Assembly: GCA_002269645.1 (NCBI GenBank)
Contig: NIVC01002031.1
Coordinates: forward strand, 1-56,140
Reading direction: 5' to 3'
DNA from: Macrostomum lignano
Taxonomy: Eukaryota
DNA: 56,140 nucleotides
Each line of letters opens with the position of its first letter. Within the stretch, counting starts at the first letter, position 1. The notes beneath the pieces were generated by a model. The model did not search any database. It saw only the letters and a list, made by a program, of their open reading frames with translations, and was not told where the DNA came from. A program made the position numbers and the translations under genes. Positions 6,101-56,140 of the stretch are shown here, in pieces.

Positions 6101-9100
6101 GGGATAGAATAGGTGTGAACGGGGATAGAATAGGTGTGAACGGGGATAGAATAGGTGTGAACGGGGATAGAATAGGTGTGAACGGGGATAGAATAGGTGT
6201 GAACAGGGATAAATTGGGTGTGAACGGGGATAGAATGGGTGTGAATGGGGATAAAATGGGTGTGAACGGGGATAGAATGGGTGTGAACGGGATTCGGAAG
6301 CTAGAAACGGTGTGAAAAGATGCACCCCGCGACACGAAAATTTAAACAGGCAGCGTAAACAAAAAAAATTTCATTCCTCACCTTCTTCTTCGGGCCGTCC
6401 TTTCCGCCGCCGCTCCCGCCGCCGCCCCCGAGCTTCTTCACATTCTTATAGCTGGTCTTGGCGCACGCTGAGTTCGACTCCTCCTCGTGCTGCGGTGCGT
6501 TCAAATTTACATCCGGCCTCTGTTGCTGCTGCTGTTGTTGCTGCTGTTGCTGCTTCTCGCAGAACTCTTGACTGCCTGCGCTGTCGTCGTGGCCCGACGC
6601 AACCGAGGCCGCTGCCGCCGCCGCCGCTGCCAGCTTCTTCATCAGGCCGACACCGCCACCGCCGCCGCCAGCAGCCGTGATAGCCGAGGTCACGGAAGTC
6701 GCAGTGGCATCGTCGCCGTCAACAATCTCATTGTAATGCCCATTGTGCTGCGCCTCTTCGCTGTCTAGACCGGCGCCTCCGCTGCCATTACCGATGCTGC
6801 CGTTGGTCTCGGAGGGCGGCAGGCCCAGCGCCTTGTCCAGCAAGTCGAAGTGGAAACTGTTGCGCTGCCGCACCTGAGCGATTGAGCAGGTGAGATTTTG
6901 GGTGCGGTCAATCGGATTCTCAAATAGGTCAGGGGAGGGATTCCCAAATAGGTCAGGGGAGGGATTCCCAAATAGGTCAGGGGAGGGATTCCCAAATAGG
7001 TCAGGGGAGGGATTCCCAAATAGGTCAGGGGAGGGATTCCCAAATGGGTCAGGGGAGGGATTCCCAAATGGGTCAGGGGAGGGATTCCCAAATGGGTCAG
7101 GGGAGGGATTCCCAAATGGGTCAGGGGAGGGATTCCCAAATGGGTCAGGGGGTTTCAAATGGGTCAAGGGGCGATACTCAAATGGGTCAAGGGGCGATTC
7201 TTAAATACGTCAGAGGAGGGATTCCCAAATGGATCAAGGGAGGGGAATTCCAAATAGGTGACAGCAAGGGCGAGTTCAAGCCCCCAAAAAGGGGATGGCG
7301 TGCCAGTACATAGCTAATAGTATATCTCACCTCATGCTGCTTCCGCAATCGATACCGATAGCACAGGTAAGTCTTGAATCCAAAGCCCAGCGTCACAATG
7401 GGATAGCCAATAGAGTGGGCGGCGAACGGCCGGCACAGGTCTACGTTAAACGGCAGATTCCGCATCTGACGCAGTCGGATGGAAAATTCTACGTAGACAA
7501 ATAGGGTCCAGAGCAGAATGGTAGGGATGCTGACTCCGCGCTCTGCGATTGGAGAAAATGTGCATGCATAGATGAAATTAATCGCCCCACAGACCCCTGA
7601 AAGAACCGCCTCACAGAACCCTTAGGAACCGCCTCACAACCCCCTTCAAGAACCGCCTCACAACCCCCTTCAAGAACCGCCCCACAACCCCCTTCAAGAA
7701 CCGCCTCACAACCCCCTTCAAGAACCGCCCCACAAACCCCTTCAAGAACCGCCTCACAGAACCCTTAGGAACCGCCTCACAACCCCTTCAAGAACCGCCT
7801 CACAACCCCCTTCAAGAACCGCCTCACAACCCCTTCAAGAACCGCCCCACAACCCCCTTCAAGAACCGCCTCACAACCCCCTTCAAGAACCGCCCCACAA
7901 CCCCCTTCAAGAACCGCCCCACAAACCCCTTCAAGAACCGCCTCACAGAACCCTTAGGAACCGCCTCACAACCCCTTCAAGAACCGCCTCACAACCCCCT
8001 TCAAGAACCGCCTCACAACCCCCTTCAAGAACCGCCCCACAACCCCCTTCAAGAACCGCCTCACAACCCCCTTCAAGAACCGCCTCACAACCCCCTTCAA
8101 GAACCGCCTCACAACCCCCTTCAAGAACCGCCCCACAACCCCCTTCAAGAACCGCCTCACAACCCCCTTCAAGAACCGCCTCACAACCCCCTTCATGAAC
8201 CGCCCCACAACCCCCTTCAAGAACCGCCTCACAACCCCCTTCAAGAACCGCCCCACAACCCCCTTCAAGAACCGCCCCACAACCCCCTTCAAGAACCGCC
8301 TCACAAACGCCTTCAAGAATCGCCTCACTAATTCCTTCACAATCTCCCTACAAACTGTTTCAGAATCTCCCTACAAAACTGTTTCAGAATCTCCCTACAA
8401 ACTGTCTACAAATGGCCCTACAAAACTGATTCAGAATGGCCCTACAAAACTGTTTCAGAATGGCCCTACGAAACTGTTTCAGAATGGCCCTACAAAACTG
8501 ATTCAGAATGGCCCTACAAAACTGATTCAGAATGGCCCTACAAAACTGATTCAGAATGGCCCTACAAAACTGTTTCAGAATGGCCCTACAAAACTGATTC
8601 AGAATGGCCCTACAAAACTGATTCAGAATGGCCCTACAAAACTGATTCAGAATGGCCCTACAAAACTGATTCAGAATGGCCCTACAAAACTGTTTCAGAA
8701 TGGCCCTACAAAACTGTTTCAGAATGGCCCTACAAAACTGATTCAGAATCTCCCTACAAAACTGATTCAGAATGGCCCTACAAAACTGTTTCAGAATGGC
8801 CCTACAAAACTGATTCAGAATCTCCCTACGAAACTGTTTCAGAATGGCCCTACAAAACTGTATCAGAATGGCCCTACAAAACTGATTCAGAATCTCCCTA
8901 CAAAACTGTTTCAGAATGGCCCTACAAAACTGTTTCAGAATCTCCCTACAAAACTGTTTCAGAATGGCCCTACAAAACTGATTCAGAATGGCCCAACAAA
9001 ACTGTTTCAGAATGGCCCTACAAAACTGTTTCAGAATGGCCCTACAAAACTGATTCAGAATCTCCCTACAAAACTGTTTCAGAATGGCCCTACAAAACTG

Positions 9101-12100
9101 ATTCAGAATGGCCCTACAAAACTGTTTCAGAATGGCCCTACAAAACTGTTTCAGAATGGCCCTACAAAACTGATTCAGAATCTCCCTACAAAACTGATTC
9201 AGAATGGCCCTACAAAACTGTATCAGAATCTCCCTACAAAACTGTTTCAGAATGGCCCTACAAAACTGTATCAGAATGGCCCTACAAAACTGATTCAGAA
9301 TCTCCCTACAAAACTGTTTCAGAATGGCCCTACAAAACTGTTTCAGAATCTCCCTACAAAACTGATTCAGAATGGCCCTACAAAACTGTTTCAGAATGGC
9401 CCTACAAAACTGTTTCAGAATGGCCCTACAAAACTGATTCAGAATCTCCCTACAAAACTGTTTCAGAATGGCCCTACAAAACTGTATCAGAATGGCCCTA
9501 CAAAACTGTTTCAGAATCTCCCTACAAAACTGTTTCAGAATGGCCCTACAAAACTGTTTCAGAATGGCCCTACAAAACTGTTTCAGAATCTCCCTACAAA
9601 ACTGTTTCAGAATGGCCCTACAAAACTGTTTCAGAATGGCCCAACAAAACTGTTTCAGAATGGCCCTACAAAACTGTTTCAGAATGGCCCTACAAAACTG
9701 TTTCAGAATGGCCCTACAAAACTGATTCAGAATCTCCCTACAAAACTGATTCAGAATGGCCCTACAAAACTGTTTCAGAATGGCCCTACAAAACTGATTC
9801 AGAATCTCCCTACAAAACTGTTTCAGAATGGCCCTACAAAACTGATTCAGAATCTCCCTACAAAACTGATTCAGAATCTCCCTACAAAACTGTTTCAGAA
9901 TGGCCCTACAAAACTGATTCAGAATCTCCCTACAAAACTGTTTCAGAATGGCCCTACAAAACTGTTTCAGAATGGCCCTACAAAACTGTTTCAGAATCTC
10001 CCTACAAAACTGTTTCAGAATGGCCCTACAAAACTGTTTCAGAATGGCCCAACAAAACTGTTTCAGATTTCAGAATGGCCCTACAAAACTGATTCAGAAT
10101 GGCCCTACAAAACTGATTCAGAATCTCCCTACAAAACTGATTCAGAATCTCCCTACAAAACTGTTTCAGAATGGCCCTACAAAACTGTTTCAGAATGGCC
10201 CAACAAAACTGTTTCAGATTTCAGAATGGCCCTACAAAACTGATTCAGAATGGCCCTACAAAACTGATTCAGAATCTCCCTACAAAACTGTTTCAGAATC
10301 TCCCTACAAAACTGATTCAGAATCTCAGTACAAAACTGTTTCAGAATCTGCCTACAAAACTGTTTCAGAATCTCCCTCTAATCCTTCTATAAACGTGCTC
10401 GCCACTCAAGAAAGGCTCACCTGAATTCCAGACGAACTGCACCCACACGTAGGTGCTGGCCAAGAAGAACAACCAGTGCACGGGAACAAAAAGGTACAAG
10501 ATGACATCTGATGTGAGACCGAGGCATAAAAAGAACAGCAGGAACATAATACCCTGGTAGCGATAGGAGTCATGGAGGGAGCGCAGCAGGAGCCAACAGG
10601 GCCACAGATATTCGAAGCGGAATTCCAATAGAAAGTCGAGCATAAGTACGACAGCCCATATCAGCAGGAACTTCAGGTATAGCAGGACACTGTTGGTGAG
10701 GTTAAAATCAATAATTTTAACATTTAGTGACAACTAGAGCATAAAACTAATACTCATAGTTCTCTCTATAAGACAGAGACAAAGATAAATTAGCCTGGTA
10801 TAATTATAATTATAAGTTATATATGTTATAATTCATTCTACCTTGCAAAAAATTGAATATGAATAGTTGATAATAAAAATATACTTAAATTGCATAGTAT
10901 TTAAGTTAAAGGAAACAAGATGCCACCAGCTTCTAACATTGGTTTTTTCTAGTGTCTATAGCATATAATTCTAGTATGTAGAATGCTAGGCAAGCTTGGG
11001 CGCAACCTAGGGATTCACCCGGCTGTTTCTATTGGCAACACACACATGTAAGTCACTATTGGACAGAATAGTAGTCACGTGACTACTCTCAGCCAATAGT
11101 GACTTACATGTGTGTGTTGCCAATAGAAACGGCTGGATGATTCCCAAGGTTGTGCATGTATGATGCTAGGTAAAGTTTTTATTACAATATCAATTGATGA
11201 TTATAGTAATATTTTTTATTCCTTGGTTAAATATAAAACAATAACATTCTAATATTCTACTAGCCAACCTGACTGATCTAGCTGGCAAGGGGCCTAACCA
11301 AGGTAGATTGCAAAAATGCCTACCCAAAAACACATGTAATACTAACTAAATGATAAAGGGCCATTCCATATAATTATGGTTGTAACATGACAGACTATTT
11401 TACTTATAAAATGAAATCTAATAATAGAATATACTAAACCAATATTTTGAATGAAATATTATTTTGTCAAGAATATGTTTATAAAGTTTCATATAGATAT
11501 CATCATTAGTATAGATGCTATTAAACCTTGAATGGCACTTATGGTTATAACAACAGGATTTTTGACATATAGAAACTAAAAGGTAAAAGTCTTATAACAT
11601 TTTTCATTTTTGATTTTTTGCAATAATTTTTTTTAAATTTGACTAAGAACATCTTTAGAAGTCATACTCTTTTATTAATATATATAAACTCAAAAAGGCA
11701 ACAAAGATACAAAAGAAAAGGCAGCCTTATGGTTGTAACAATATGGTCCTAACATATTTTTTTCTGTCAATTCAGTAACTTCAAGGTACCAATATATTAA
11801 AAATATAATAGATTATATGGTTGCTAATGTTTTTATCTGATGATGCAGGTACTATAATTTTATATATAGTTTGTTTTAACCTTCTAAAGCTTTCTATTTG
11901 TTTTTAAAAGGTACATAAACTTAATGATGTCTTTCGCTTAGAAAATGTCCAATTTTTTACAAAAATAACTTTTTGCCAATTGATGACATACTAATCCAAC
12001 ATTTTATCATTTATTTATTCTTAAATTGTATACATTACATACAAAAAAGATTTGGTAAAAAAAATTGGCTGATAAGGCAATGACAAGCAAAAATATTGAA

Positions 12101-16318: not shown

Positions 16319-16956
16319 AAATTGCATAGTATTACATGTAGAATGTACCTTTAAGAAAAAAAATATGATTTACAATATGGATTTCCATTTACACTGTACA
16401 AGTACATTTAAATTCTTACAATCAACAGAAAAACGTTTTAAATATATTCTACTTTGTCTTTAGCTCGTATCTGTCGTAGAACGTTATTAAAAAGAGAATT
16501 TTTAAGGACAAACCAATGCAAACTGCATGGTAATAAGGTGCTAAAAAGTGGTTGCAAATTCAATCTTCCTTTTTACAGACAGGATTAAACTTGAGTACCG
16601 CTGTTTTTAGCAATTGTTGGTTGCGGACAGCAATTGGCACCTGCTTCTTATGTTGCTTAAAGATTTTGGCTTTTTTAAAAGGCGCGAACGCAATAAGATT
16701 ATAGAGGTCCAAAAAGACCGCTTGGCAACTTCTATTGAATGAATTTTGAGGGGGGAGGTGATAAAGATTCTTAAGTAGAGCAGGTGTGAAAAAATATCTG
16801 TGCTTATTTGTAGTTCTTAGATACAGCAGCACAGCTGGAAACTGCGAATAAGACTGCCGTTGGTTGTGAAAAATCAATTAGAAGACAATAATTTTCTCTG
16901 AGCACAGTCAGGTGGTCTCAACAAAACATGAGAGGATGTCGGCGATAGAGAGATTC

Positions 16957-17572
16957 TGTGAGATGAGATTCGGTGAGTTGAGATTCGGTGAGATGAGATT
17001 CAGTGAGATGAGATTCGGTGAGATTCGATTCGGTAAGGTGAGATTCGGTGAGATGAGATTCGGTAAGGTGAGATTCGGTGAGATAAGATTCGGTAAGATG
17101 AGATTCAGTGAGATTCGATTCGGTAAGGTGAGATTCGGTGAGATTCGATTCGGTAAGGTGAGATTTGGTGAGATGAGATTCGGTAAGGTGCGATTTTGTG
17201 GGATGAGATTCGGTCAGATGAGATTTAATGAGTTGAGATTCGATGAGTTGAGATTCGACGATATGAAATTGGTGAGATGAGACTCGGTGAGATGAGATTC
17301 GGTGAGATGATAATCGGTAATTTGAGATTTGGTGAGATGAGATTCGGTGAGTTGAGATTCGGTAAGGTGAGATTCGGTGAGATGAGCTTCGGTAAGGTAA
17401 GATTCGGTGAGATGAGATTCGATGAGTTGAGATTCGGTAAGGTGAGATTCGGTGAGATGAGATTCGGTGAGGTGGGATTCGGTGAGATGAGCTTCGGTAA
17501 GGTGGGATTCGGTGAGATGATATTCGGTGAGATAAGATTCGGTGAGATGAGCTTTGTCGAGATGAGATTTGA
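16957..17572. repeat. GAGATTCGGTGAGAT-type 10/15-bp minisatellite
   Basis: Tandem units are directly visible. Confidence 0.9.
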
Positions 17573-18264
17573 GTAAGCGAGGAGTAAGAGTGCAACATAT
17601 CGACTTTGCCAAGTCAGCAATCCTTTTTTTGATAACGAATCAAAAATTTAAAGCAGCTGAACTTGCTTCTACGAGCGTATTGGCTATAACTCTATATATT
17701 CTCTAACCTTATGACGTCATAACCAAACTGGCGGTCTTCCCAATGATGCCGAGGTGAAAATAGCTCGAATTTCAAAGTGTGAAAAATTCTGCACAATCAA
17801 GTCCTGTCTGGTGTTGAGTTTTTTCTCAACATTAGCAAAACACCCCCAGGCGATGTGCCGGCGAATGCATGGGATCATTTTGAGTCGTTTTTGTTCCCCT
17901 CACCCGAAGTGAGGCCTGATTTATGACTTGCTAAAAGTCTCAATTATATTAGAAAGGTGGGCAAGAAGGCCTGTGAGACCTGCTGCAACCTACCTGAGCT
18001 CAGCTCACAGGTCTGACTTGCAGGAAAAATTTATAACTTTTCTGATTTGTCTATCGACTGCCTGGCCAGACATAATTACTGCATGCTCAATTACAGTGAG
18101 GTGATTTTCTAATTAACACTTCACCTTTTTCTTATCGTGCTCTGCTTTTTGTGCTGGTCCTCAATTTATGTACGAGTCTGCTTGTTCAAATGCTGCGGCT
18201 CTGACACTCTCAGATGCATATATATATCTCTTTGCATATTCACCTGATGTCCGCTCATCATTCC

Positions 18265-29994: not shown

Positions 29995-32731
29995 ATGGAT
30001 TCTAAATTTTATTTTAGTATTCTCAGTTATCTGTTGGCATTGAATCATTTCCTATCGGTAAGATTCTGGAGAACTTTGTCGCTGTGTCTATCTTACTCAA
30101 CAATTCTATAATTTCTCACTACACTTTCAACAGGTAGTGCAAGCAGCCGGCTACCTGCAGATTAAGTTCAACCGGTACACCAATCATGACGGCCGTGTCG
30201 AGGACGGCAGTCTCTGCGATCCGTTCGGTGCCACCTATGTTGGCGATAATTGCGACCCCGTGTTCCGGCTGAGGGTCAACAAGGGGGGAGGAGGAGGGTG
30301 AGTGAGGGTTTTAATCTGCAGTCCATATTTCCTATTGCTGAGATCAGTTCTGCGTGATTACCACGGCCTCATCTCTCTGCAGCGGAAATCTATACGACTA
30401 TCAGCAACCGGGCGTCTATGACAACCAAAACACCATCGACTTTGGATCAAAGTTCGGCAGCGTCCCGAATCCTGTGCCGATCGCGATGAACTTCCCTAAT
30501 CCGGTAAGACTGTACTCATGAGGGAGAGGAGACTGTACTCACGAACCGCTCTCGGAGCCTTGAGTGATTCTTCATTGTGCATCACAATATTCTAATAAAC
30601 TGTTTGCTACCAAATTTCGCAAACCGCTTTAGGGACACGCGTACGTCAAAGTCGATGTAGTGGACAAAGACACGTTTCCACCAGACGACCCGATGAGCAA
30701 ATTCACCGCCTCGCTGCCTCTCATTGCCGACAATGTCAGGAGAGACATGGAGCTGATCAGTCCGGCTCGACATCACCGACTATCCATAACTCACTGGTTC
30801 ACCTGCTACACGAATTTCTACAGACAGGATTGCAACACCTATTGTGTAGCTCAGAACGACGATGTGAATGGTCATTATACCTGCGACTCGAATGGCAGAA
30901 AAGTGTGCATGATTGGTAAGAGCATCTGGTGATGGCTTGTTTTATTAAACCAAGCAGTAATGCATGACGGAATCGTTTAATCAGAGACTTGCTTGTAACA
31001 AATGAACTGCAGGTTGGACGGGAGCCGACTGTACTCAGCCGGACCCCTGCATCCCGAGTCCGTGTCTCAACGGAGCTACTTGCTCCAATGTCGGAGGAGT
31101 CGCCAGCTGCTCCTGTCCGTCGGGCTTCACTGGTAGCCGATGCGAGACCGATATCGACGAGTGTAAGGCCGTCGAATCGCCCTGTCTGAACAACGCTACA
31201 TGTGAGAACACGATTGGCAGTTTCCGCTGCAAGTGCTCACTCAGCTTCACTGGCGAACGCTGTGAGACCGACGTGAACGAGTGCGAGAGCAAGACGTCAG
31301 TGTGCCTAAACAACAGCACCTGTGAAAATACGTTCGGCGGCTTCAACTGCAGCTGTCCGCCGGGTCTGACTGGGCACCGGTGCGAGCTCGATGTGGACGA
31401 GTGTGCAAACGGGACATCAGCTTGTGCGAACGGTGGTACCTGCGTGAATGTGTTTGGTAATTACACCTGCCAGTGCGACTCTGGATTCACTGGCACACTT
31501 TGCGAAGAAGACGTCGACGAGTGCACAGAGTCGCCATGCGTGAACGGAGGAACATGCGAAAATCGATTCGGAAGCTTCGAGTGCATCTGTCCTTCTGGAT
31601 TTGCTGGAAGAGTGTGTGACAAAGACGAGGACGAGTGCTTGAGGAGTCCTTGCTCGAATGGCGGTAGCTGTGTGAACACCATCGGAAACTTTACTTGTCA
31701 GTGTCCTCCGGGTTTTGAGGGTAGATTCTGCGATGAAGACGTCGACGAATGCCTAATGGCACCTTGCTTCAATGAGAGCACCTGCGTAAACACTATCGGA
31801 AACTTCACCTGTCAGTGCCCCCCGGGATTCGAAGGCAGACTCTGCGATAAAGACGTCGATGAGTGTTCGGAGTCTCCGCCAAAGTGTCGCAACGGCGGAA
31901 ACTGCACGAACACGGTTGGGAGCTTCCGTTGTACCTGCCCGACTGGATTGAACGGAACTCACTGCGAGCAGGACATCGACGAGTGCAAGCTGGCCGCCCC
32001 GCCGTGTCGAAACAACGGAAGCTGTCAGAACAGTTTTGGCGGATTTTCCTGCCGTTGCGGACCAGCGTTTAGAGGCAGACACTGTGAGATTCGCTCTGAG
32101 GCCTCGGTTGGGTCTCCGACTGGTGAAGTCTGGAAGCTTCCTGTTTTCATCGGAATTCCAGTTGCAGCACTCGCCGTTGTCTCCATTGTCATCGTCGTTA
32201 TCTGTAAAAGGAAATCGAGGTAAGAGACGACGAGCTGCAATATCAATTTGGCGAATTGAATTCAACATAAATCTAACCCTGCAGAATGCAATTTATAGCC
32301 TGACATTAAAACGCCATTCCAGTCGCAGAAGCTGCAGTGGTAGCGGGAGCGTCAGAAGCACTGATGCTGCAAGCAATGATTATTATAACACTCATGTCGA
32401 ATTCGGGTAGGTTCAAAAATCTGGTAGTTTCCTCTTCATCAAGTATGGTGGATAGCAAATGTATTGCGCTAAACCATAACTGATCTTCCTTGTTCTTGTC
32501 TGCAGCTCGACTGAAGAGCCAACTAAAGATCCAACTGAAGACCCAACTGAAGACCCAACTGAAGACCCAACTGAAGACCCAACTGAAGACCCAACTGAAG
32601 ACCCAACTGAAGACCCAACTGAAGACCCAACTGAAGACCCAACTGAAGACCCAACTGAAGACGACTACACCATCGCAGACAAAGCGGAGACACTTGAAAA
32701 TGACTATTCAACTATAACCCTATACGAGTAG
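29995..32731 (+). CDS. DSL-family (Delta-like) paralog A: signal peptide, C2/MNNL, DSL, 9 EGF, TM, tail with (TEDP)n
   Basis: Exons 29995-30057, 30134-30297, 30383-30503, 30633-30915, 31013-32219, 32323-32406, 32506-32731, all GT-AG and in phase. DSL: [47 protein letters not shown]2-9 have the Ca-binding DxD/NEC motif. TM: LPVFIGIPVAALAVVSIVIVVIC. Confidence 0.88.
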
Positions 32732-36399: not shown

Positions 36400-39300
36400 C
36401 ACAATGTACACATACTGAGCGAGACTAATTTTCTTGGTAATTTAAAATCTTGGTAAAAAATCTGCCGATGTCAAGCTCCACAATCAGTAAATTATTTAAT
36501 TAGCATTAATTGCATGGCGAAAGGTCTAAACAAGTCATGATTTTTATCCAAGGACCATTGATATTTTAAGCTAGGGTCGTTGCACTATTACATGCATGTT
36601 ATGTATAGTGTATTATATAATTTTTGTGACAGTTTATTGTATAAATTCGTGTGCATAGCCTAGAATTGGAAACAATTTATAGTGTTAAATAAATAGAAAG
36701 TAAGTTACACATAGTAATAGAAAAGTATAACTAAAAAACAGTAAGAAATACAGATAGGCGACAAATTTATGTCTTTTCAAATTGTAGAAAAAAATTTTAG
36801 TTCTTGGTGTAGCCACAGTTGGAGTAAAGCCGAGAGAAAATTTGTGGCAGAATGTCCATAGACTATTTCGTGCCATGAGAGTCTAAAACACTGCATGACA
36901 TGAGAAGCCTTGCTGTGAAGTTTCAGGGGTTGGTTTGTCTATGACCAGACCTCAAAATAGAGAGCTCCAACTGTAACCTCACCAAAAATTAAACAAAAAC
37001 CTGAATTTGTCCCCCATTTGTCAAAACAAGAATTTTGGTGCACCAATCGGTTTTAAAGTAACTCGGATATTATTGCACCTTCAACAGAACTGCTTACAGC
37101 ACAGTAGCCCATTTTACAGATGCCGCGAGCTGTACACCGTGATGCACCTGAGCAAACGCCGAGCATACTCCGGATGAGTTGCATCCACCTTGAACCGTTG
37201 ACTCCACATGTCGCTGAAGTCGCGATGTGCCGACTCCATCGCCTGCTCAGACCAAAACCCAAGGCCTCGGCGACACCCATATTGTACTGCCATCGCTTCC
37301 AAAAACTGCGGCACGTGGTCAATGAGGGCATGGGCCTTCGGAGTGATGTTGATGGCCAGAGCGTGGTATGCCGCCTCGAACTCTTTGACTGCTGTATCGT
37401 AGCCTTCAAGCAGTTGTTGGCCGAAGCACTTCTGCTGGACAGCTCGCAGGCAGCTGAATGCATGGGCGACAGGCACTCCGCTGAAGGCAGCGTGGTCAGC
37501 GAGGATCTGGCGCAGGCTGTCGACTCCACCAAGCAGTCGGTCGCACTCATTGCCATTGAACTGGCTGCCATGATACGGTGAGCGCCGTACATGAAGAGCC
37601 TCAGCCCACTGTGCAGCACGGACTCCGTCGGGACCCAATGCTGTCAGGCGCTGCTCAAGCTCGTCGTACAGCCTGTTGACAAGGCCTAGCAGCAGGTGGA
37701 GCTCCATGGGTGGCACGGCTTCTAGCGTGTTTGAACTGTCTGGCCAATTCAGCAGTGGTTGCCTGATGCAGTTGTAGAATGGCTCTCCTGATGGCTTTGA
37801 GCTTCGTTGCCCCTCGATGCGCTGATACTGAGCAGCTTGGCTGCGAATAGAGCCGAAAGTCCGCAATCTGACACTGCGATGGGGATTGGCGAACTCTTTT
37901 CGAGGCGTCTCGCACCACGGGCAGGGATGGGCGCTGCTGGCGCTCTGCAGTCCAAGAAGCACATTTGCAAGTTTCATGTCCACGGAGCTGCAGAAAGACA
38001 CGTCTTCTAGGTTCAGCAGATTGAGCACAGTTCGCACGTTCTCATAGTACTCCGGTACTTTTTCAACTGCTGCGATAATTATTAGCTTCTTTACACCACC
38101 TTCGGCAAAAGGGCTGCTGCCGGCCTCGGTGACACCGCCTAGTAGAACAGATGACTGCTCCCCGGACCGGACCAATGTCATGCAAACTTTAAAAAAGCCG
38201 CGTCCTCCATCAATACCAATCTTAAGCAGGAAGCTGCCAGGATCAGGATCCATTCTCCGCCGTGCCAGCACGTAGCCCACCAAGGCAGAGACGTTGGAGC
38301 AGAACACAACAGTCCGCGTTTCAAATTCGCCCGTGCTGCAACGGACCTGGACTGACTCTGTTGCATAAAATGGATCCAACTCGCTATTCAATTCTGCCAG
38401 GCGATGCAGGAGGTTTGGCTCGATCGAACTGCGACCCTTCCACTCACGGAAGAACTGGGCCGCCTGTCTGGTTTGCCGACCACTCAAACCGATCGCATCC
38501 TGCATCCTGGCAATCTCACTAGCCGGCACTGCTATGTCACCAAATGCACCCGCGGAGCACCTGCTACTCTGAGCGGACACGCTTAGCGTGATTGGGCGGC
38601 CTCGAGTTGCCAGCCGAATAGGCGAATCGCCACCTGCGTCTGTTAACTTGGCTTTGAGGACGTCACTAACATGAATTTCTGAACCACGCGGATCACGTGA
38701 CAGCTCAGAGCAGATGTTATTTAGCCAGCGAGATTGCGTACAGGCGTGGCTAAGACCCCTGCCAATGGTGGAGTGACATCTCTGGCAGATTGTGATGGGA
38801 CGAGCAGGTGGCACCTCCTTGTTTGGCGAATCGGTTTTCGGTCTGCCAAGGCGATGCGGCTCCGGCTTCCAGGTGCCGAGTCCTTTGCCGATTGGACTTT
38901 CTCTGGCAATCTCACAGAGACAGCAGCTGCACTTCGGGTGGCCCCTTGTTTCCTTTGTCGGTACGACTTTTGAAAAATCAAAAGGGGCAGGAAGAGCTTC
39001 AGAAGTTCGATTCCCCCGTTCAATATCCAGCAGCAGACCCTGGCATCGAGCACATAGAGCAGCTGGGAGAAACTCGTTCTTCAAATCGTAGTTTGCATAA
39101 AAGTACCGCTGTATGCGAGGTAGAGCTGCTTTGCCAATGCGCTGCATGCCTGACCCGCGCTTAAAGCACACAAGGCAGACCTTCAGCCGGTTCTCTTCGT
39201 GAGATTTTGAGTAGTTTGGCATGGTGGTGTTCAGTTCAAGGCTTTTCAATTCCTAAATGCTGAGATGAGCTGATTTATGCTAAATTAATCATTTATATAG

Positions 39301-39836: not shown

Positions 39837-42800
39837 ATGATTTTACAGCTACTCTTGTTGCTAACTGGCGCAAGCGTCGTCAATAGCAACGGCTACATGA
39901 CGCTGCGGTTTCTGTCCTACATCAACCATGACAGCCGGTGTCAGGACGGGACATACTGCGATCCCTTCGGCCTCACGTACGTCGGAGACAAGTGCGACCC
40001 GCAACTTAGACTGATGGCCGACCGATCTGTGCCTGGAGGGTAAGTTTACTGAGCAGTTTTAAAGTAGCAGCTCATTTCAACCATATTATTTAAACAAACA
40101 AACAAAAAATCACCCACTGATTTCGTACAGAAACGGCCTGTTCGACTATCAGCAGCTGGGTGTCTACTGGGACACGGAGACCATCAATTTCGGAAGCCGA
40201 TTCGGAGAAATCAGCAATCCTGTGATCATCGCGATGAACTTTCAAAACCACGTAAGATACGCTCACAAGTTTTGTTGGAAAGTCGGCAAAAAGGACATTA
40301 TTCTAGATAAATATTGAGTTAGCAGATGGGCAGATGTGCAACCGATAGCTCAGCCGCAGCTCAAGGCTGCGTACGGCTGTTCATTCCAAGGAATGGGGGT
40401 CGCTGGCACCCATTTTACAGTTGGGTGAACTGAAGCAATGCAGAGTTAAGTGTCTTGCTCAAGGACACAAATTGTTCCAGTGGGCTTTGACCTTGACCTT
40501 TAAATTGACCTTTAAGTCGACAGTCCGACGCTCTAAACTCTAGGCTACACCCCCTCTCTGCTACACCCCCTCTCTGCTAGGCTACACCCCCTCTCTGCTA
40601 GGCTACACCCCCTCTCTGCTAGGCTACACCACCTCTCTGCTAGGCTACACCCCTCTCTGCTAGGCTACACCACCTCTCTGCTAGGCTACACCCCCTCTCT
40701 GCTAGGCTACACCCCCTCTCTCTGCTAGGCTACACCCCCTCTCTACTAGGTTACACCCCCCTCTCTACTAGGTTACACCCCCCTCTCTGCTAGGCTACAA
40801 CCCCTCTCTGCTAGGTTACACCACCTCTCTGCTAGGCTACAACCCCAATAAAAAAACGAGCAGAAACTAAAGCTACGAGCGTAAAACAAAAAATAAAACA
40901 GAAGCTAAAAAGAGCTGATTCCCAGCCTCATTCGGGTCTCATCACAGTCCTTAGTCACGTCGAGGCAGACGCGTATTTAATAAAGCAAATCCCCCAATCC
41001 ACACCAAATATTATCCAGGGGCATATTTACGTCACAGTATTGGCGGTAGACAAGGATCCCACTCCCCCGGACGATCCAATGGACACATTCTCAGCGGCGC
41101 TGGTGGCTCGAGCCGACAAAGTCAAGAGAAGAGTCGAAATGCTCAGTCAGCCAACAAACCACAAACTGTCCACTGAGTACTGGTACAGCTGCCATGCAAA
41201 CTACTACGGACTTGACTGCAACACGTTCTGCCAACCTCAGAATGACAACGTCAGGGGCCACTACAGCTGCAGCTCGGAGGGAGCTATGATGTGCTTCACA
41301 GGTACACAGCAATCATTTTATATAATTTCCAATAGTTTTTTATATTAATGTGAACTAAAAAGACAATTCGTCATCGAAAAATAAAATAAATGAACTGCAG
41401 GTTGGACGGGAGTCGACTGTACTCAGCCGGACCCCTGCATCCCGAGTCCGTGTCTCAACGGAGCCACCTGCTCCAATGTCGGAGGAGTCGCCAGCTGCAC
41501 CTGTCCGTCGGGCTTCACTGGTAGCCGATGCGACACCGATATCGACGAGTGCAAGGCCGTCGACTCGCCCTGTCTGAACAACGCTACATGTGAGAACACG
41601 ATTGGCAGTTTCCACTGCAAGTGCTCACTCGGCTTCACTGGCGAACGCTGTGAGACCGATGTGAACGAGTGCGACAGCGAGACGTCAGTGTGTCTCAACC
41701 ATGGTACCTGTGAAAATACGTTCGGCGGCTTCAACTGCAGCTGTCCGCCGGGTCTGACTGGGCACCGGTGCGAGCTCGATGTGGACGAGTGTGCAAACGG
41801 GACATCAACTTGTGCGAACGGTGGTACCTGCGTGAATGTGTTTGGTAATTACACCTGCCAGTGCGACTCCGGATTCACTGGACCACTTTGCGAAGAAGAC
41901 GTCGACGAGTGCGCAGAGTCGCCATGCGTGAACGGAGGAACATGCGAGAATCGATTCGGAAGCTTCAAGTGCATCTGTCCTTCTGGATTTGCTGGAAGAG
42001 TGTGTGACAAAGACGAGGACGAGTGCCTGAGGAGTCCTTGCTCGAATGGCGGTAGCTGTGTGAACACCTTCGGAAACTTTACTTGTTTGTGTTCGGCAGG
42101 TTTTACTGGCAGTTTGTGCGATGAAGATATCGACGAATGCCTAATGGCACCTTGCTTCAATGAGAGCACCTGCGTAAACACTATCGGGAACTTCACCTGT
42201 CAGTGTCCTCCGGGGTTCGAAGGCAGACTCTGCGATGAAGACGTCGACGAATGCTCGGAGTCTCCGCCAAAGTGCCGCAACGGCGGAAACTGCACGAACA
42301 CGCTTGGGAGCTTCCGTTGTACCTGCCCGACTGGACTGACCGGACCTCACTGCGAGCAGGACATCGACGAGTGCAAGCTGGCCGCCCCGACGTGTCGAAA
42401 CAACGGAAGCTGTCAGAACAGCTTTGGCGGATTTTCCTACCGTTGCGGACCAGAGTTTAGAGGCAGACGCTGTGAGATTCGCGCTGAGGCCTCGGTTGGG
42501 TCAACGACTGAGGAGCCCTCGAAACTTCTCGTTTATATTCTAATTGGAGTTGGAGTACTCCTAATTGGCGCTATTTCTGTTGCTGTTGGCATTGCTGTCT
42601 ACAGAATTAGAAGAAGGTAAAAACAATTTCAATCACTTATGAAAATAAATTTCATCACAAATCGTGCTGATGGGATTGCATTTACTAAATCACCCGCAGC
42701 GGCAGAAGCAATATCTCTGGAGCTGAGAACAATGAGACCGTATCTGACTGCGCTGCTATCGAACAGGGGTAAGGAAAATATTTCTGCAACTTTCTTCTTT

Positions 42801-48674: not shown

Positions 48675-51600
48675 TCAATACCTCATCGGTTTGAATGTAG
48701 AATCGCTGTCAATGTAAAAGGTGACGCTTCGAGTCGACAAATTACCTTCGATTACTAAATCAAAGAAATCAATGCTTACTCCGTATTATATGTATGATTG
48801 TCCACCATATCTGGCTCGACTGTACTGCCTCGACGGGACCTGCTAATCACGGAGTTGAGAAAGTTAGGTTTATCTGTTTACGGCCTCAAAGAATGTTAAC
48901 AGAATGTTCAGTGTTAATACCTGACTGCCTGTGAAATACGTTCGCTGTTCGTGATGCCGGCGACAGTCAGTATGAACGCTACGATCAGAATGACACCACC
49001 GACAGTTGCTAAGGCAATGATGAGGGTCTGCTGATTCGGCTCCGCAGGTTTCTCTGCTGTCTCGCAAAGTCGTCCGCTGAATCCATCGGGACACTGGCAT
49101 CTGTAGCTGCCAAATTCGTTCACGCAGGTGCTGCCGCTCGCGCAGTCGGACTTGCCCTCGCACTCGTCTACATCGATCTCGCATCGGCTGCCTGTTAATC
49201 CCACGGCACAGATGCAGTTGAATCCGCCGAAGGTGTTCAGGCAGGTGCCGCCGATGCCGCAAGGTGAGGCCGATATCTCGCACTCGTCAGCGTCTGCCTC
49301 GCAGCGACTGCCGACAAAGTTTCCTGGACAGAGACAACTGAACCCGCCGAATGTGTTTTGACAAGTGCCTCCGTTCAGACACAGCGAAGTCCCATTCTCA
49401 CACTCATTCACATCTGCCTCACAACGGGCGCCTGTGAAGTTTGGCGGACAACTGCAGTTGAATGCACCGAATGTGTTCAGACAGGTGCCTCCATTATGAC
49501 ACGGGGAAGTGCCTGAATCACACTCGTTCACGTCCCAGCCGCAGAGGCTTCCAGTAAAGCCCGAAGGACAGTTGCAGTTGAATCCGCCAAAGGTGTTAAT
49601 ACAGGTACCTCCGTTCAGACAGAGTGAAGTTCCTGTGTCGCACTCGTCCACGTCAGTCTCACAAAGACTGCCATTAAAGTTTGGGGGACAACTGCAGTTG
49701 AATGCACCGAATTTGTTTAGACAGGTGCCTCCATTCTGACACGGGAAAGTGCCTGAATCACACTCGTTCACGTCCGAGCCGCAGAGGCTGCCAGTAAAAC
49801 CCGAAGGACAGTTGCAGTTGAATCCGCCAAAGGTGTTAATACACGTACCTCCGTTCAGACAGAGTGAGGTTCCTGTGTCGCACTCGTTCACGTCAGTCTC
49901 ACAAAGACTGCCATTAAAGTTCGGCGGGCAGCTGCAGTTGAATCCGCCAAAAGTGTTGATGCAGGTGCCATTGTTCTGGCACGGTGGAATGTCTAGAGCG
50001 CATTCGTTCAGATCCTCACAACGACTGCCAGTAGAGTTTTCCGGGCAGACACAATCGAATCCTCCATAGGTGTTTAGGCACGTTCCTCCATTCGAGCAGG
50101 TCGGCAGATCAAGTTCGCATTCGTTGACATCCGTCTCGCAGCGGCTTCCGTTGAAGTTTGGCGTGCAGGTGCAGTTGGCAATGTCGCCGACATTGGAACA
50201 GGTGCCTCCGTTGTAGCACGGGCTTTCGAGACACGGAATCAGTCGGGTGCAGTTGGTGCCCATCCAGTCTGTAAACGTATTACAATTAAAAATGCAAACA
50301 TTTCAGCAGCAGTCAACAAACTAAAAGACACATATTAGTAGTGACCTCGAAGCTCACCTGACATGCAAACTTTGTTGCCATTAGAATCGCAGGTATAGTG
50401 GCCTGTAGAGTCATTGCGAGGCTTGCAAAGTGTGTTACAGTCCAGTCCGTAGTAATGGCTGTGGCAGGTGTACCAATAGGTAATTGATAGCCTGTGGTGC
50501 CTCGGAGAACTGTAGATGTCCATGTTTCTCCTTACTGAGTCAGCCCGAGCCGGTAGACTTGCGTAGAAATGGTCCATATGGTCGTCGTAAAATTCGTCTT
50601 TGTCCATCGCGACAACCGTTATTTGTATGCTGCCCTGTTAATGTTAGAAATGTTGAGATGTGGCGTTCTGGTCACAGATATATTGTACTGTAGGTAGCTA
50701 TACAAACTAAAAGTACTAAGATTGCATACCGGATTCCAGTAGGGCATGTCTATAACGACTGGATTGGCAATTTCACCGAACCTGCCGCCGAAGTTGACAA
50801 TGTCCGAATCCCCATAGTATCCAGCTTGACCGTAGTTAAATAGATTGTTCCTGTGGGCAGGAATTTCGAATGGCAATCGTTAACTCAAGGTAAATTCAAT
50901 AACTCTCCCGCCAAAACTACTAAGTAGAATTAGACTAGTAATCTTAGCCCCCACATGGGTAGACAACGGAAGAAGTAGTAAGATTAAAAACTCTTAGAGA
51001 TTGATCTCTAATCCTTGGCAGCTCAGAATTCCCCCTTGAGCCAGTGAAATCCTAATAAATTCTTCACGGAAATCCCTAGGGAATGCCTTAGGAATGCCTT
51101 GGGAATCTCAGCATTCTACATTTATCGATGGCATTTCAGCAATTCCAGCGTAGTCTTAGCAACCCCCCCCCCCCAAAAAATGAGCTATATAATCTCAGCA
51201 AAATATCGAGGCACAGCTAAATTTTTTCAATCCACAATTATTAAACAAAGCATCCCATATTATTTAATCTACAGTGCTTGTTGGTTTAGTTGCCAAAAAC
51301 AAATTCAAACAGGGTCTTTTTAACATTACACCGATGGATGGATGGTTAGCATGTCTGTCGGATTGCTGTAGGGAGCGAAAGCACAAGCAGAACTTATTAA
51401 TCTACCGTGAACATCTCTTTCTAAAGGCCCTCGTCAGCAGCAATAATTTACCCTCCGGCGTTGGTCCTGTCAGCAAAGAGTTGGAATTTCGGATCGCAGG
51501 CTGACTCTCTCCAGGAAAAGAACGTGTCGCAGTACGTCCCGTCCGAGGCTCTGCTGTCATGATTATAGTAGGTGTGGAATTGTACATGCATGGACCCAGT

Positions 51601-51763: not shown

Positions 51764-52214
51764 TTCGTTAAACTTGAGGAATTTTTTTCAAACAGAGCCT
51801 TACGAGCCTTACTGTTTTATAGCCAATACTAGGACACATACACTGGTACCTTTGTGTGCTTGTAGGGGGTCCACTTTAGCTCAGGTGCTATCTAGTGTAT
51901 ATTTTTAAGAAACTTGTTTATCTACAAAATCTATTTATTTGGACTTTACCATCAACGAGTAGATGCAGTAAATCTATTTATGGATATGCAGCATCAACTA
52001 TATCAGCTTAACTGGACACTTTTTGATGAGTTTGAACAAGAAAAGAAAAAACATCCTTGTGCCTTGCGTTTTTATTGCACAGAGATGCGTTTTTATTGTC
52101 GATTGCATATATAGAATAAATTGACTGTTACCTAGTGCAAACTGTGCACCAGCTGACTTGTGCAACATTCTGTAAACATTGAATACAATTGAAAAGGTAC
52201 CTGTGCATCTGAAC

Positions 52215-52501
52215 GCACGCGAAGGTGTATTCAGCACGCCAGTGAAGTATGAGACAGACCAGGCCTATGGGCTACGGTCTGCGATGCTTCACGCCTGCCC
52301 CTATCTTCAGCAGGTCAAGGCTGGAGAGGGAGGTCTGCACCCGCTATTTGCCGCTGGCAGCCGCAGACCCCCCCTCACGCTGTTTCACAAGTCGACCCAG
52401 GGTACTCGTCCCCGCGTGTGTTCAAGGCAGACCCTAGGGCTGCTGGACAGACTGGGCTCCGACGCTGGCGACCCATCCAGTGGCTTCGGCCAAATTTGGG
52501 T
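52215..52501 (+). ncRNA. Candidate HDV-like (CPEB3-type) self-cleaving ribozyme at the retrotransposon 5' end
   Basis: P1 GCACGCG (52215-52221) pairs with CGCGUGU (52413-52419) with a G1.U wobble. P2 ACCCA (52395-52399) pairs with UGGGU (52497-52501). P3 GGG/CCC encloses L3 UACUCGU. G52420 is available for P1.1. J4/2 is C-C-A-A-A (52490-52494). Folded by eye only. Confidence 0.7.
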
Positions 52502-52683
52502 ATGCGGGTCTGGCTTGCCAGCCTGCAGGCCGTGGTACTGCTTAACGTACCCCCTTATGCCTAAGGTGTTTGACCGTGCCGATGGGCTGGAAGGCCGGGG
52601 GGTTGTCCGGTCGCTAGCGGTCCTTTTCTTTTTCTTCTTTCCTCTTTTTTTGTGACTCAGCTCACTCCTTCCCGCTTTCAGCT

Positions 52684-53772
52684 ATGGCGTCATCCGCCTC
52701 TTTCAACCCCGCTGAAGCCGGGGCCCCGGCAACTCCGGCCGGTGACTCTGGCACCAGCGCCGCCCCACCGGGGGCAGATGGGCTTGCCGCCGGCTCGGCC
52801 GGTGACATGCCCGCACGCGCAACCGGGCCCTCCGCTGAAGCCCGACGCACCCGCAACCAACGCCGCAACGAGCGGCGACGGCGACTACGGGTACTGCGGG
52901 CCGGCCACCGGCGGAGGGGAACCTAGGGAGGGCGAGGCTGCTGTTGGGCCGAAAGGAACCACAGCAACCCCTGCCCCCAGGATACAACCCCCGCTGGTGA
53001 GCCACCCAGTATATCTGCTACAAGCGCGGCCGGGCCTTCGGGAACCGCCGCCACCAACTACGCCTCAAAGGTCAAGCTCCAACCGGCGGTCATCGTCTTC
53101 GGGGAAGAGCAGGACCTCACGGCCGACGAGCTCGACAGTGCCTGGCGCACCATCGATGCTGCGCTCATCGACCAGCTCCTGGCGGGCCGCCCTGTGAGCG
53201 TGGTCAAGTCTGCCAAGACCGACGGCTGCATCTTCATCTGGTGCAGCTCGGAGGAGAGCAGCCGCAATCTACGCGAGCTTCTGCCAAAGCTGAACTGGCC
53301 CAAGAAGCTCGGCAAGCTCGTCTTCGCCAGCGAGGGCGAACGACAGAAGACCCAGCGCTTTCGCGTCTGGATCCCGGCCGGCAGTGCCATTAAGTCCGGA
53401 GATCAGCTTAGGCAAATATTGCTAAAGCTGCACCCCGACCTTGAGGTCAACGGGCTCCTACACCACGCCACTTCCCGCAAGGAGAAGGGGGCTACGGTGA
53501 TCCTAGGGCTCTCTGATGACTGGGCTAAGCGCTTGCCGCCTAAGTCCACAATTCATATTGGTCTGACTCAGCTGACCATCCTCCGTTGCGAGGAGCGGAA
53601 AGCTGATGAAGCCAAGAATGCCAAAGCTTCCGAAACCGGAACTGGGGCCCAGGCTCCTCCGGCAAAGAAGCCGAGGCAAACGGCCGATCCTATGCCGGTA
53701 AGGCAGTTCGCGCTGCTGAAACCGGAAATCGCAATCGCAGACCCGCCAGGAGCACCCGGAGGTCCGGCCTGA
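52684..53772 (+). pseudogene. Retrotransposon ORF1 (gag-like), frameshifted
   Basis: ATG at 52684. An Arg-rich RRTRNQRRNERRRRLR segment. Reading switches frame near 52920-53010 into NYASKVKLQPAVIVF...DELDSAWR...RFRVWIP...TIHIGLTQLTILR. Confidence 0.7.
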
Positions 53773-54128
53773 TCCAGCGCGCGCTGGACCAGGCCAAGAA
53801 CCTTCGTGCGCATCGTGAGCGGGCCCGCGCTTCTCGCGCTCCACCCAACAGCCAGAAGGCCAGACTCTAAGCGGGAGGCTCCGACCGACTGGTTCGAGTC
53901 TGTGACTCACCAGGAGGCTGGCGCCACCCGCATCGACCTGACCGACGAGGCAGAGGGGACGGGCAGTGACAGCACCGAAGCACGCAGGGAGGCGACGGTA
54001 ACGTCCACGCTGGGCTCACGCCGCGGAGGACTCCACAGCCACCCTAACTGCTGAGGACGCTGAAACTCCCATGGAGGTCTGCGGGTCACCCACCACTGAA
54101 AAGGAGGAGGATGACCTGCTCAACGATT

Positions 54129-56140
54129 CCCAACTGCGTGATAATGATCAGCGACCAAGGAATCCATTGCCTGCAGATTAATCTGCAGCACTGCGTCGCA
54201 GCCTCGGTCAACCTTATGCGTTACGCCGAGCTCGACAAGCCGGGGCTCATCCTCGTCCAGGACCCCTGGACTCTCAGAGGTAAGCCTCAGAACGCCCCTG
54301 CTGGCTACAATTGTTTTTATACTTGCCCTCGCGAGGCCAACCAGCCTCCCAGAGCTTGCATCTTTGCGAGCAAAACGCTCAGTGCGTGGCTCAGATCGGA
54401 CCTGTCCAACAGGGACATCTGCGTCATCCAATCCGAGGACCTTCTTCCTGGGAAGACCACCCTCATTGCCTCGGTTTACCTACCAGGCGATGCTGCGGTC
54501 GTCCCCAGAGCCCTCGCTACGCTGGTAGAGCTCTGCTCTGCCAAAAACTACGAGCTCATGGTTGCCGGCGACATCAACGCCCACCACACTCACTGGGGCA
54601 GCACTGGCATTAATCAGAGAGGCGAAGACCTCCTAGCCTACGTTGCCTCTACGACCCTCGAGTTCTGCAACTCTGGTCCACCCCTACCTTTGACAACGGA
54701 CGGTGGTCGGAGGTGATCGACGCTACGCTCGCAACGCCCAGACTCTACCAGAGTATTGGAGCGTGGCGGTGCTTCCAGTGTCCTCACTCTCGATCACAAG
54801 TTCATCTCCTTCAACCTAATGGCCGCGCGTAGCGCAACTCGTGTTACGTGGAGACGGAACGCCAGAAATACGGATTGGGAAACCTTCGGGCTCGCCCTGA
54901 AGGAATTCCATCGGTCTCCTGGCCAACCATCCACGATCACGTCGTGCCGAGAGGCGGATGAGTGCGCGACTGTTTTGACAGAGACGCTAACCGCCGCCTT
55001 TGAGGCGTCCTGCCCTTTAAAAGCCTATAAAGGGAAAAATCGGCGCCGTGGTGGAATCCCGAGCTCGGCAACCTCCGTCGCAGGGCTAAGAGACTCCACC
55101 GCAGAGCAACTAAAACTAAGAGCCCTGCAGACCAAACGCCTATCATGAAGCAATTCATGAGTTTAAAAGGAGGTTAGGAATGCAAAGGCTCAAAAATGGC
55201 GACAATACTGTGAGGAGCTAGAGGGCTCACGCCCCACCTCCAGAGTTGTGAAAGCGCTCACGCTGGACAAAATGTCTAAGCTCTCCTCGGTCAAACGCAC
55301 CGACGGTACGTCCACGGACAACCCAGGGGAAACGCTTGATGTAATGCTCACTGCGTTTTTCCCCAACGAGCCAGCTAACCAGACCACTCCGGATCACTCG
55401 GAGGGAGGTCACGCGCTGGCTGCCTCTATCATCACGGAGGACCGCATTGTGAGAGCGGCAAATTCCTTCAAGCCTTTCAAAGCCAGGACCCGACGGCATT
55501 GTACCGGCCCTTCTAAGAGAGGCGGTTAAATGCCCAGGCTTCCTGCGCAAACTTTGCAGCCTTCTTCGGGCATGCATCACGCTTGGTTATGTCCCACAGG
55601 CTTGGACCGAGGCAAAGGTGATCTTTATCCCTAAGCCAGGCCGCTCGGACTACCATTCTATCAAATCCTTCAGACCGATCAGCTTGACCTCCTCCCTGGT
55701 CAAGCTGATGGAGAGACTGGTGCTTTGGCGCCTTCTCTCTGTTGAGCTGAAGAACAAACCTCTCAGCGAGAACCAGCACGCTTTTCGGGCGGGTCGCTCC
55801 ACTGAAAGCGCGCTGCACGTCCTGGTCGATAAACTCGAGAAGCCGTGCTTGGTAATGGCTTTGCTCTGGGGATCTTCCTGGATATCATTGGCGCCTTCGA
55901 TAACGTCCTCTTTGAGGCGTTCCGAAGAGCTCTTTGTGAGAGGCAAACGCACTCACATCTCACCAGATGGATCATGTACATGATCAGCCATCGCACGGCC
56001 ACCGCCAGTCTGCTGGGCTACCAGAGGACGGTCCCCGTCTGCAAAGGTAGCCCGCAAGGTGGGGTGCTGTCTCCAGTTCTCTGGAATATGGTCATCGATG
56101 AGCTCCTCCGGGATGTTCGGCCTGACCCATTCTGAAAGTT
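54129..56140 (+). pseudogene. Retrotransposon ORF2 (AP endonuclease and reverse transcriptase), frameshifted, incomplete at the window end
   Basis: Motifs are spread over ORFs 54111-54716, 54756-55148, 55248-55529, 55618-55983 and 55845-56135 in different frames. Confidence 0.85.

Follow-up and report, generated by a model that had tools for sequence, protein, structure and literature searches.

A candidate large HDV-like ribozyme at the start of a decayed APE/RT LINE

Introduction

Where does a non-LTR retrotransposon begin, and can its own RNA define that point? It is well established that HDV-like ribozymes occur at the 5' termini of such elements, with examples in R2, R4, Dong, Baggins, RTE and L1Tc/ingi, and the L3 loop of the family follows the pattern U-N-C-N-C-G-N. 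The role proposed for these LINE ribozymes is the release of the element RNA from a co-transcript (PMC3774820; PMC6765202). Within L3 there are conserved C and G sites (PMC3774820). An initial annotation of a contig of Macrostomum lignano read positions 52215-52501 as a ribozyme of this kind located at the first base of a LINE. We have analyzed this locus to find out if the leader of the element does encode an HDV-like ribozyme or is only a GC-rich, hairpin-rich sequence that looks like one. Throughout, the window refers to the whole stretch of DNA analyzed (56,140 nucleotides).

A LINE at a compositional boundary

Change-point analysis placed a rise in GC content, from ~35% to ~60%, near position 52196 (2-lnL range, 52190-52234). 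Downstream of this rise the window contains a single decayed non-LTR retrotransposon of the APE/RT LINE type (Table 1). The predicted cleavage site had been described as lying close to the switch from AT-rich to GC-rich DNA, and this was confirmed, G52215 being within the change-point interval. Directly upstream of that site, the AT-rich DNA contains the motif GTGCA four times within 75 nt (52134-52208); this could be host DNA, a promoter or chance. Another peculiarity of the leader is a pyrimidine tract of 33 nt (52623-52655), nearly all T or C, found between the conserved block described below and the ATG of ORF1 (52684).

Self-BLAST revealed no second copy of the element within the window, and searches of metagenome contigs, either with an exact 20-mer of the core or with an ORF2-based scan, gave no second copy of the family. 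The ORF1 protein search produced no database relative. For ORF2 the best database matches reached 34% identity. The initial annotation called the element LOA-like; the placement supported by its relatives goes only as far as the group of LINEs bearing RNase H and an ORF1 of the DUF4780 type.

The rest of the window provides the genomic setting. Three long ORFs at 31273-32223 (+), 41661-42620 (+) and 48914-50263 (-) code for calcium-binding EGF repeats that bear Delta/Jagged-type EGF signatures; judging from these signatures, Notch-ligand-like or EGF-repeat genes seem to be clustered here. The LINE is located ~2 kb beyond the last of them. Other ORFs include a fragment of the Macoilin family at 5417-6325 (-), a pentapeptide-repeat ORF at 16918-17598 (-), an ORF of 682 aa at 8195-10243 (+) with sub-threshold Pfam matches only, and one of 711 aa at 37114-39249 (-) that had no Pfam family.

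Table 1. Coordinates of the predicted ribozyme and of the other features of the LINE in the window
Feature	Position	Strand	Remarks
P1 5' strand GCACGCG	52215..52221	+	predicted cleavage 5' of G52215, the would-be first base of the element
J1/2	52222..52394	+	173 nt; three hairpins; MFE of the isolated segment -70.9 kcal/mol
P2 5' strand ACCCA (5-bp P2 of the initial annotation)	52395..52399	+	5' strand of the 11-bp alternative at 52388-52398
P3 GGG/CCC and L3 UACUCGU	52400..52412	+	P3 52400-02 with 52410-12; L3 52403-09
P1 3' strand CGCGUGU	52413..52419	+	duplex -10.4 kcal/mol
J1/4 G-U	52420..52421	+	possible partners for a 2-bp P1.1
P4 domain	52422..52489	+	68 nt; imperfect base, strong inner 10-bp helix
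J4/2 CCAAAUU	52490..52496	+	C52490 and C52491 are the candidates for the catalytic C
P2 3' strand UGGGU (5-bp P2)	52497..52501	+	5 bp; duplex -5.8 kcal/mol
Alternative P2 3' strand GGGUC[U]GGCUUG (11-bp P2)	52506..52517	+	pairs with CAAGUCGACCC at 52388-98
Proximal 5'-UTR block	52558..52626	+	common to the window element and lepidopteran LINEs with DUF4780 ORF1; nhmmer E=6e-12
ORF1	52684..53772	+	one in-frame stop at 52924-26; weak colinear similarity to DUF4780 ORF1
ORF2	54111..56140	+	Exo_endo_phos_2 and RVT_1 (endonuclease, reverse transcriptase); several stops/frameshifts; continues past the window end, inside the RT

Pairings of the predicted ribozyme core

All the pairings of the initial annotation were found in place and in the correct nesting, both by direct reading and by an independent script that located them again. 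The order of the strands is P1-J1/2-P2-P3-L3-P3'-P1'-J1/4-P4-J4/2-P2', that of a nested double pseudoknot. P1 consists of 7 bp, Watson-Crick throughout except for the G52215.U52419 wobble, in agreement with the 6-7 bp and first G.U pair that characterize the family. P3 has the expected 3 bp and L3 the expected ~7 nt, the loop following the family pattern given above; only 13 cores with this P3/L3 pattern exist in the whole window, counting both strands. P1.1 had been described as a single pair of the G in J1/4. G52420 can indeed pair, and two base pairs are possible instead of one (C52405-G52420 and A52404-U52421), so that, as read from the sequence, the 1-2 bp between L3 and J1/4 typical of the family are available. 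P2 should stack on P3 with at least 5 bp, and two helices could do so, either the 5 bp abutting P3 or an 11-bp helix separated from it by a spacer of 1 nt.

The peripheral domains are large. J1/2 is a closed domain, with a closing helix (52225-35/52379-88) that leaves linkers of 3 nt to P1 and 6 nt to P2. It had been said to be strongly self-paired, and the three hairpins named in support of that are all present in its MFE fold. Its length, which had also been called unusual, has precedents: the J1/2 of the silkmoth R2 ribozymes measures 216-498 nt (PMC3774820). Regarding P4, the closing pairing TCAAGGC/GCTTCGG exists and is imperfect, with an A.C mismatch and two G.U pairs; a stronger 10-bp helix, ~GGCUGCUGGA (from ~52437) with UCCAGUGGCU (52476-85), overlaps it. 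J4/2 offers CCAA or CAAA for the canonical C-N-R-A, with 2-3 additional nt intervening before the 5-bp P2. This junction had already been recognized as longer than usual; the excess is 2-3 nt rather than the 1-2 originally counted. Whichever P2 is chosen, the case for a ribozyme is weakest at J4/2.

Predicted ribozymes at the 5' ends of related elements

The nearest ORF2 relatives, P0001 and P0002, are encoded on eukaryotic contigs (ENA ERZ25067590), their ORF2 being 34% identical to that of the window. The elements at these loci (L001 and L002) have APE-RT and an RNase H ORF, accompanied in L002 by a DUF4780 ORF1. Both contain compact canonical HDV-like candidates (L002:4025-4098 and L001:2079-2152) that match the strict descriptor specified below. 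Over the full length of the models, they scored 31.9 and 31.2 bits (L002 and L001, respectively) with drz-agam-1, with a threshold of 37, and ~32 bits with HDV-F-prausnitzii, with a threshold of 44. They fall just below the gathering scores of Rfam and would therefore be missed by routine annotation. When L001 and L002 were compared, the identity went from 0.2-0.4 upstream to 0.94-0.98 exactly from G1, a jump that, on the basis of this alignment, has the expected signature of a 5' end defined by a ribozyme. The device and its place are those predicted in the window, in the same type of element (APE-RT-RNase H with DUF4780 ORF1), with L3 UCCACGU or UUCACGU and 1-nt extra base after C-N-R-A as further likenesses. 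On the other hand, their J1/2 has only 9 nt, P4 is a 5-bp hairpin, the scores approach the Rfam thresholds and the rest of the 5' UTR could not be aligned with that of the window.

A layout more similar to that of the window was found in two other elements, L004 (a Logan contig; the relatives of its ORF1 are from Lepidoptera) and L008. Like the window element, they have a terminal P1, a closed J1/2, the succession P3-L3-P3'-P1'-GG, a P2 3' strand of the GGGUC-U-G type and the proximal UTR block. The first bases of both are GGGGGGG, complementary to CCCUCCU in L004 and to CCCCCCU in L008, and the C/U difference between the two P1' strands preserves the pairing with G. P1' comes directly after ACG-L3-CGU and is followed by GG; L3 is UCCACGA in L004 and the 8-nt UCCGCCGU in L008. 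The closing helix of the long J1/2 (~125 nt in L004) is a 7-bp GCUAGAG/CUCUAGC located 2 nt after P1, and in the relatives it begins 2-3 nt after P1. Upstream of the G-run, L008 has unrelated AT-rich DNA. The identity between L004 and L008 was 86-95% in P1 and the closing helix, the core and P4, and decreased to 56% in the interior of J1/2 and to 63% in the middle of the UTR. What separates both from the window is the sequence of P1 and P3, entirely different, the 8-nt L3 of L008, a J4/2 of 17-19 nt (with non-canonical junctions, CAUA and CGGU, and a P2 that is non-canonical too) and the distance from core to proximal block, longer by ~300 nt. Across the families the P1 sequence is thus wholly different yet complementary, and one compensatory pair appears in P2 between L004 and L008. 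The large layout proposed for the window thus recurs, with other P1 and P3 sequences, in the family with which the leader block is shared.

As for the remaining contigs, L009 and L010 retained only the proximal block, with no core that we considered convincing, and in L003, L005, L006, L007 and L011 the 5' leader was absent or the elements were truncated. A P2 located far downstream in L004 (629-635, after CGAAUC) was also considered and rejected, as it is not kept in L008 and its UCGGG pairs locally with CCCGA. Two further features of these contigs deserve mention. L008 has, ~20 nt before the LINE begins, a perfect palindromic hairpin in its AT-rich DNA (L008:6-48, CCCACTAGTTCCTTTGAAA...TTTCAAAGGAACTAGTGGG), possibly the terminus of another mobile element. 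The sequence CCGAG[C/T]GATCCA, which holds the 5' strand of P2 (L004:129-141), is found as a direct repeat ~210 nt downstream (L004:339-351), and also in L008.

The proximal block was located at L004:537-639, L008:605-707, L009:2824-2928, L010:2825-2929 and L011:2870-2923. It comprises an invariant AAGGUGU, the elements ACCGUGCCGA / ACCGUGCC and a 5-bp stem ACCGU/RCGGU, together with a 7-bp hairpin (52593-52612 in the window) that covaries, with four compensatory pairs and 100% pairing. No Rfam family matched the block at 52558-52626. A gapped pattern derived from it gave more than 120 matches in viral contigs that were attributed to chance, as judged with nhmmer. As a tentative suggestion, the DUF4780-ORF1 LINEs of Lepidoptera and of the host of the window might share a leader of two modules, the first a large HDV-like subtype (closed J1/2 of 120-175 nt, long bulged GGGUC-U-G P2, J4/2 of 16-19 nt) and the second this separate structured block upstream of ORF1, perhaps serving in cap-independent translation or in the recognition of the RNA by the proteins of the element itself.

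Two candidate P2 helices

The relatives are also informative about which P2 the ribozyme would use. The pairing ACCCA/UGGGU of the initial annotation exists, and it is probably not the best P2, given that the 11-bp alternative has a counterpart in them. This longer helix, with one bulge, has an energy of -14.8 kcal/mol vs. -5.8 for the shorter one. Its 3' strand was the best partner within the 280 nt downstream, a result equalled in 2.7% of shuffles, and the base-pair probability in the ensemble was ~0.5. The corresponding helices of the relatives, GCGAUCC/GGGUC[U]GC in L004 and GUGAUCC/GAGUC[U]AC in L008, have the same bulged form in the same place and differ by one compensatory change from C-G to U-A. 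Besides, long P2 helices accompany a large J1/2 in Agam-2 and in silkmoth R2 (PMC4908430; PMC3774820). We therefore take seriously, at somewhat less than even confidence, a version of the same ribozyme in which P2 is the bulged helix 52388-98/52506-17, the molecule would end at 52517, and ACCCA/UGGGU would be a competing or transient register. The cost is a J4/2 of 16 nt, long like those of the lepidopteran relatives, that ends in AUGC and has no C-N-R-A adjoining P2'; with the 5-bp P2, J4/2 stays close to canonical apart from its 2-3 additional nt. Also against it are the C.A mismatch in the helix of L008 and the fact that the comparison involves three sequences only.

Predicted cleavage and decay of the copy

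Taken with either P2, the region from 52215 to ~52501-52517 is probably the 5' leader of the decayed APE/RT LINE, encoding a predicted large HDV-like ribozyme, and it is similarly probable that the ancestral element made use of it. The ribozyme proposed by the initial annotation at the 5' end gains from the rarity of the motif, its position at the boundary and the cores at the 5' ends of the relatives, and loses from the lack of Rfam matches and the long J4/2. From what is known of the family (PMC3774820; PMC6765202), we infer the following course of events. A longer RNA containing the element would be transcribed, either by read-through or by internal transcription. Its first 7 nt would pair just 3' of the P3/L3 hairpin to form P1, J1/2 would fold on itself setting P1 and P2 side by side, and P1.1 would be formed by L3 and J1/4. 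C52490 or C52491, at the start of J4/2, would then act with Mg2+ in catalysing cleavage, the 2'-OH of C52214 attacking the phosphodiester at 52214/52215. This would release the upstream RNA and leave an element RNA starting with a 5'-OH at G52215, and reverse transcription up to that end would produce new copies beginning at the same base.

That this exact copy still cleaves is less likely than its use by the ancestor. The ORF1 stop and the several breaks of ORF2 mean that the ribozyme may be mutated too, and it is conceivable, if somewhat unlikely, that only the master element had an active ribozyme and the decayed copy no longer cleaves, for example as a result of the extra J4/2 bases (2-3 nt too many) or of the A.C mismatch in P4. 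The core helices are all still perfect, however, something unlikely after heavy decay.

Chance resemblance and an alternative cleavage site

A GC-rich and hairpin-rich leader could also be an internal promoter or a translation element that was never self-cleaving and resembles a ribozyme by chance. A loose descriptor, with helices only, L3 free and a J1/2 of up to 250 nt, illustrates the problem, as it matched ~12 distinct places in the window; the helices alone are consequently not significant. A strict descriptor that adds the L3 pattern behaved differently. The number of matches expected per block-shuffled window, both strands included, was 0.095. When the first 600 nt of the element were shuffled, 0.12% (0.0012) of the shuffles gave any match and 0.02% (0.0002) gave one with P1 at 25 nt or less from the boundary. 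A scan of natural, unrelated DNA (2.1 Mb) gave 3 matches, i.e. 1.4 per Mb. In the real window the strict descriptor had only one match besides the 52215 site, at 38725-38410 (-). This second match falls inside the 711-aa ORF mentioned above, a point in favor of chance resemblance in general, but its P3 contains two G.U wobbles and we judged it to be a chance match itself. The data thus support a match that is statistically unusual and lies where the composition changes, at the 5' boundary of an APE/RT LINE.

The searches with covariance models proposed by the initial annotation (HDV-like and CPEB3) gave no match in the window. Specifically, no HDV-type match was obtained with Rfam at gathering score over the whole window, nor at E<=10 on 52100-52700 and 52385-52510 (HDV, CPEB3, drz-agam and F. 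prausnitzii families); the weak matches in these regions were miRNA-like only, to the long hairpin of J1/2. Because the models cannot absorb a J1/2 of 173 nt, this absence is a weak negative. Thermodynamic folding did not help either. The MFE of the whole region had a z of -1.6, which is not unusually stable, and in the nested ensemble P1, P3 and the 5-bp P2 had a probability of ~0. The same result was obtained for the compact ribozyme of L002, in which P1 had a probability of 0.01. We have thus rejected nested folding as a test, and the values of ~0 for the window carry little weight. The non-canonical J4/2, the missing Rfam match and the ordinary folding energy fit a leader without ribozyme activity; the local rate of ~1e-3 for the strict descriptor and the presence of the device at the 5' ends of relatives oppose it, and on balance we regard chance resemblance as improbable.

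Cleavage at 52233/52234, with the second GCACGC (52234-39) pairing with 52414-19 as a 6-bp P1 (-8.0 kcal/mol), would still be within the change-point interval, but it is very improbable, with a P1 one pair shorter and an overlap with the J1/2 closing helix strand 52225-35, a helix that in the relatives comes 2-3 nt after P1.

Comparison with known systems

The presence of ribozymes at LINE 5' ends and of long J1/2 domains is already documented, so the window provides at most a new example and no new principle, in a lineage where such a ribozyme seems to be unannotated. If it cleaves, it would add to the LINEs with a 5' end set by a ribozyme a lineage with APE-RT, RNase H (in the relatives) and DUF4780-type ORF1 that has relatives across Lepidoptera. 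A further natural case of large J1/2 would also become available for studying how peripheral domains tune folding, and the true 5' boundary of the repeat family would be fixed for annotation. The known picture of how such elements work would be unchanged.

With the known 5' ribozymes of LINEs, the window shares the order of the double pseudoknot, the G.U at the cleavage site, the 3-bp P3, the 7-nt L3 and P1.1, as well as a location ahead of ORF1 that starts with the element's first base. It differs in the 2-3 additional nt of J4/2, the ambiguous P2, the predicted status of its cleavage and the lack of an Rfam match, and in an element family with database relatives no closer than 34% in ORF2. 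The closest structural parallels are the large ribozymes. A long J1/2, a long P2 and a variable P4 and J4/2 all have precedent (PMC3774820; PMC4908430). The mosquito drz-Agam-2 combines a P2 of 12 bp with a P1.2 'pinch' (PMC4908430; PMC3774820), and experiments have demonstrated that a closed J1/2 with short linkers activates large HDV-like ribozymes (PMC4908430). The window resembles drz-Agam-2 and silkmoth R2 in its long structured J1/2 with a closing helix and short linkers (the 'P1.2 pinch' layout), in its variable P4 and J4/2 and, should the 11-bp helix be the one used, in its long P2. Unlike them, its J1/2 has three hairpins, its sequence is unrelated, and the element that hosts it is neither an R2 nor an RTE.
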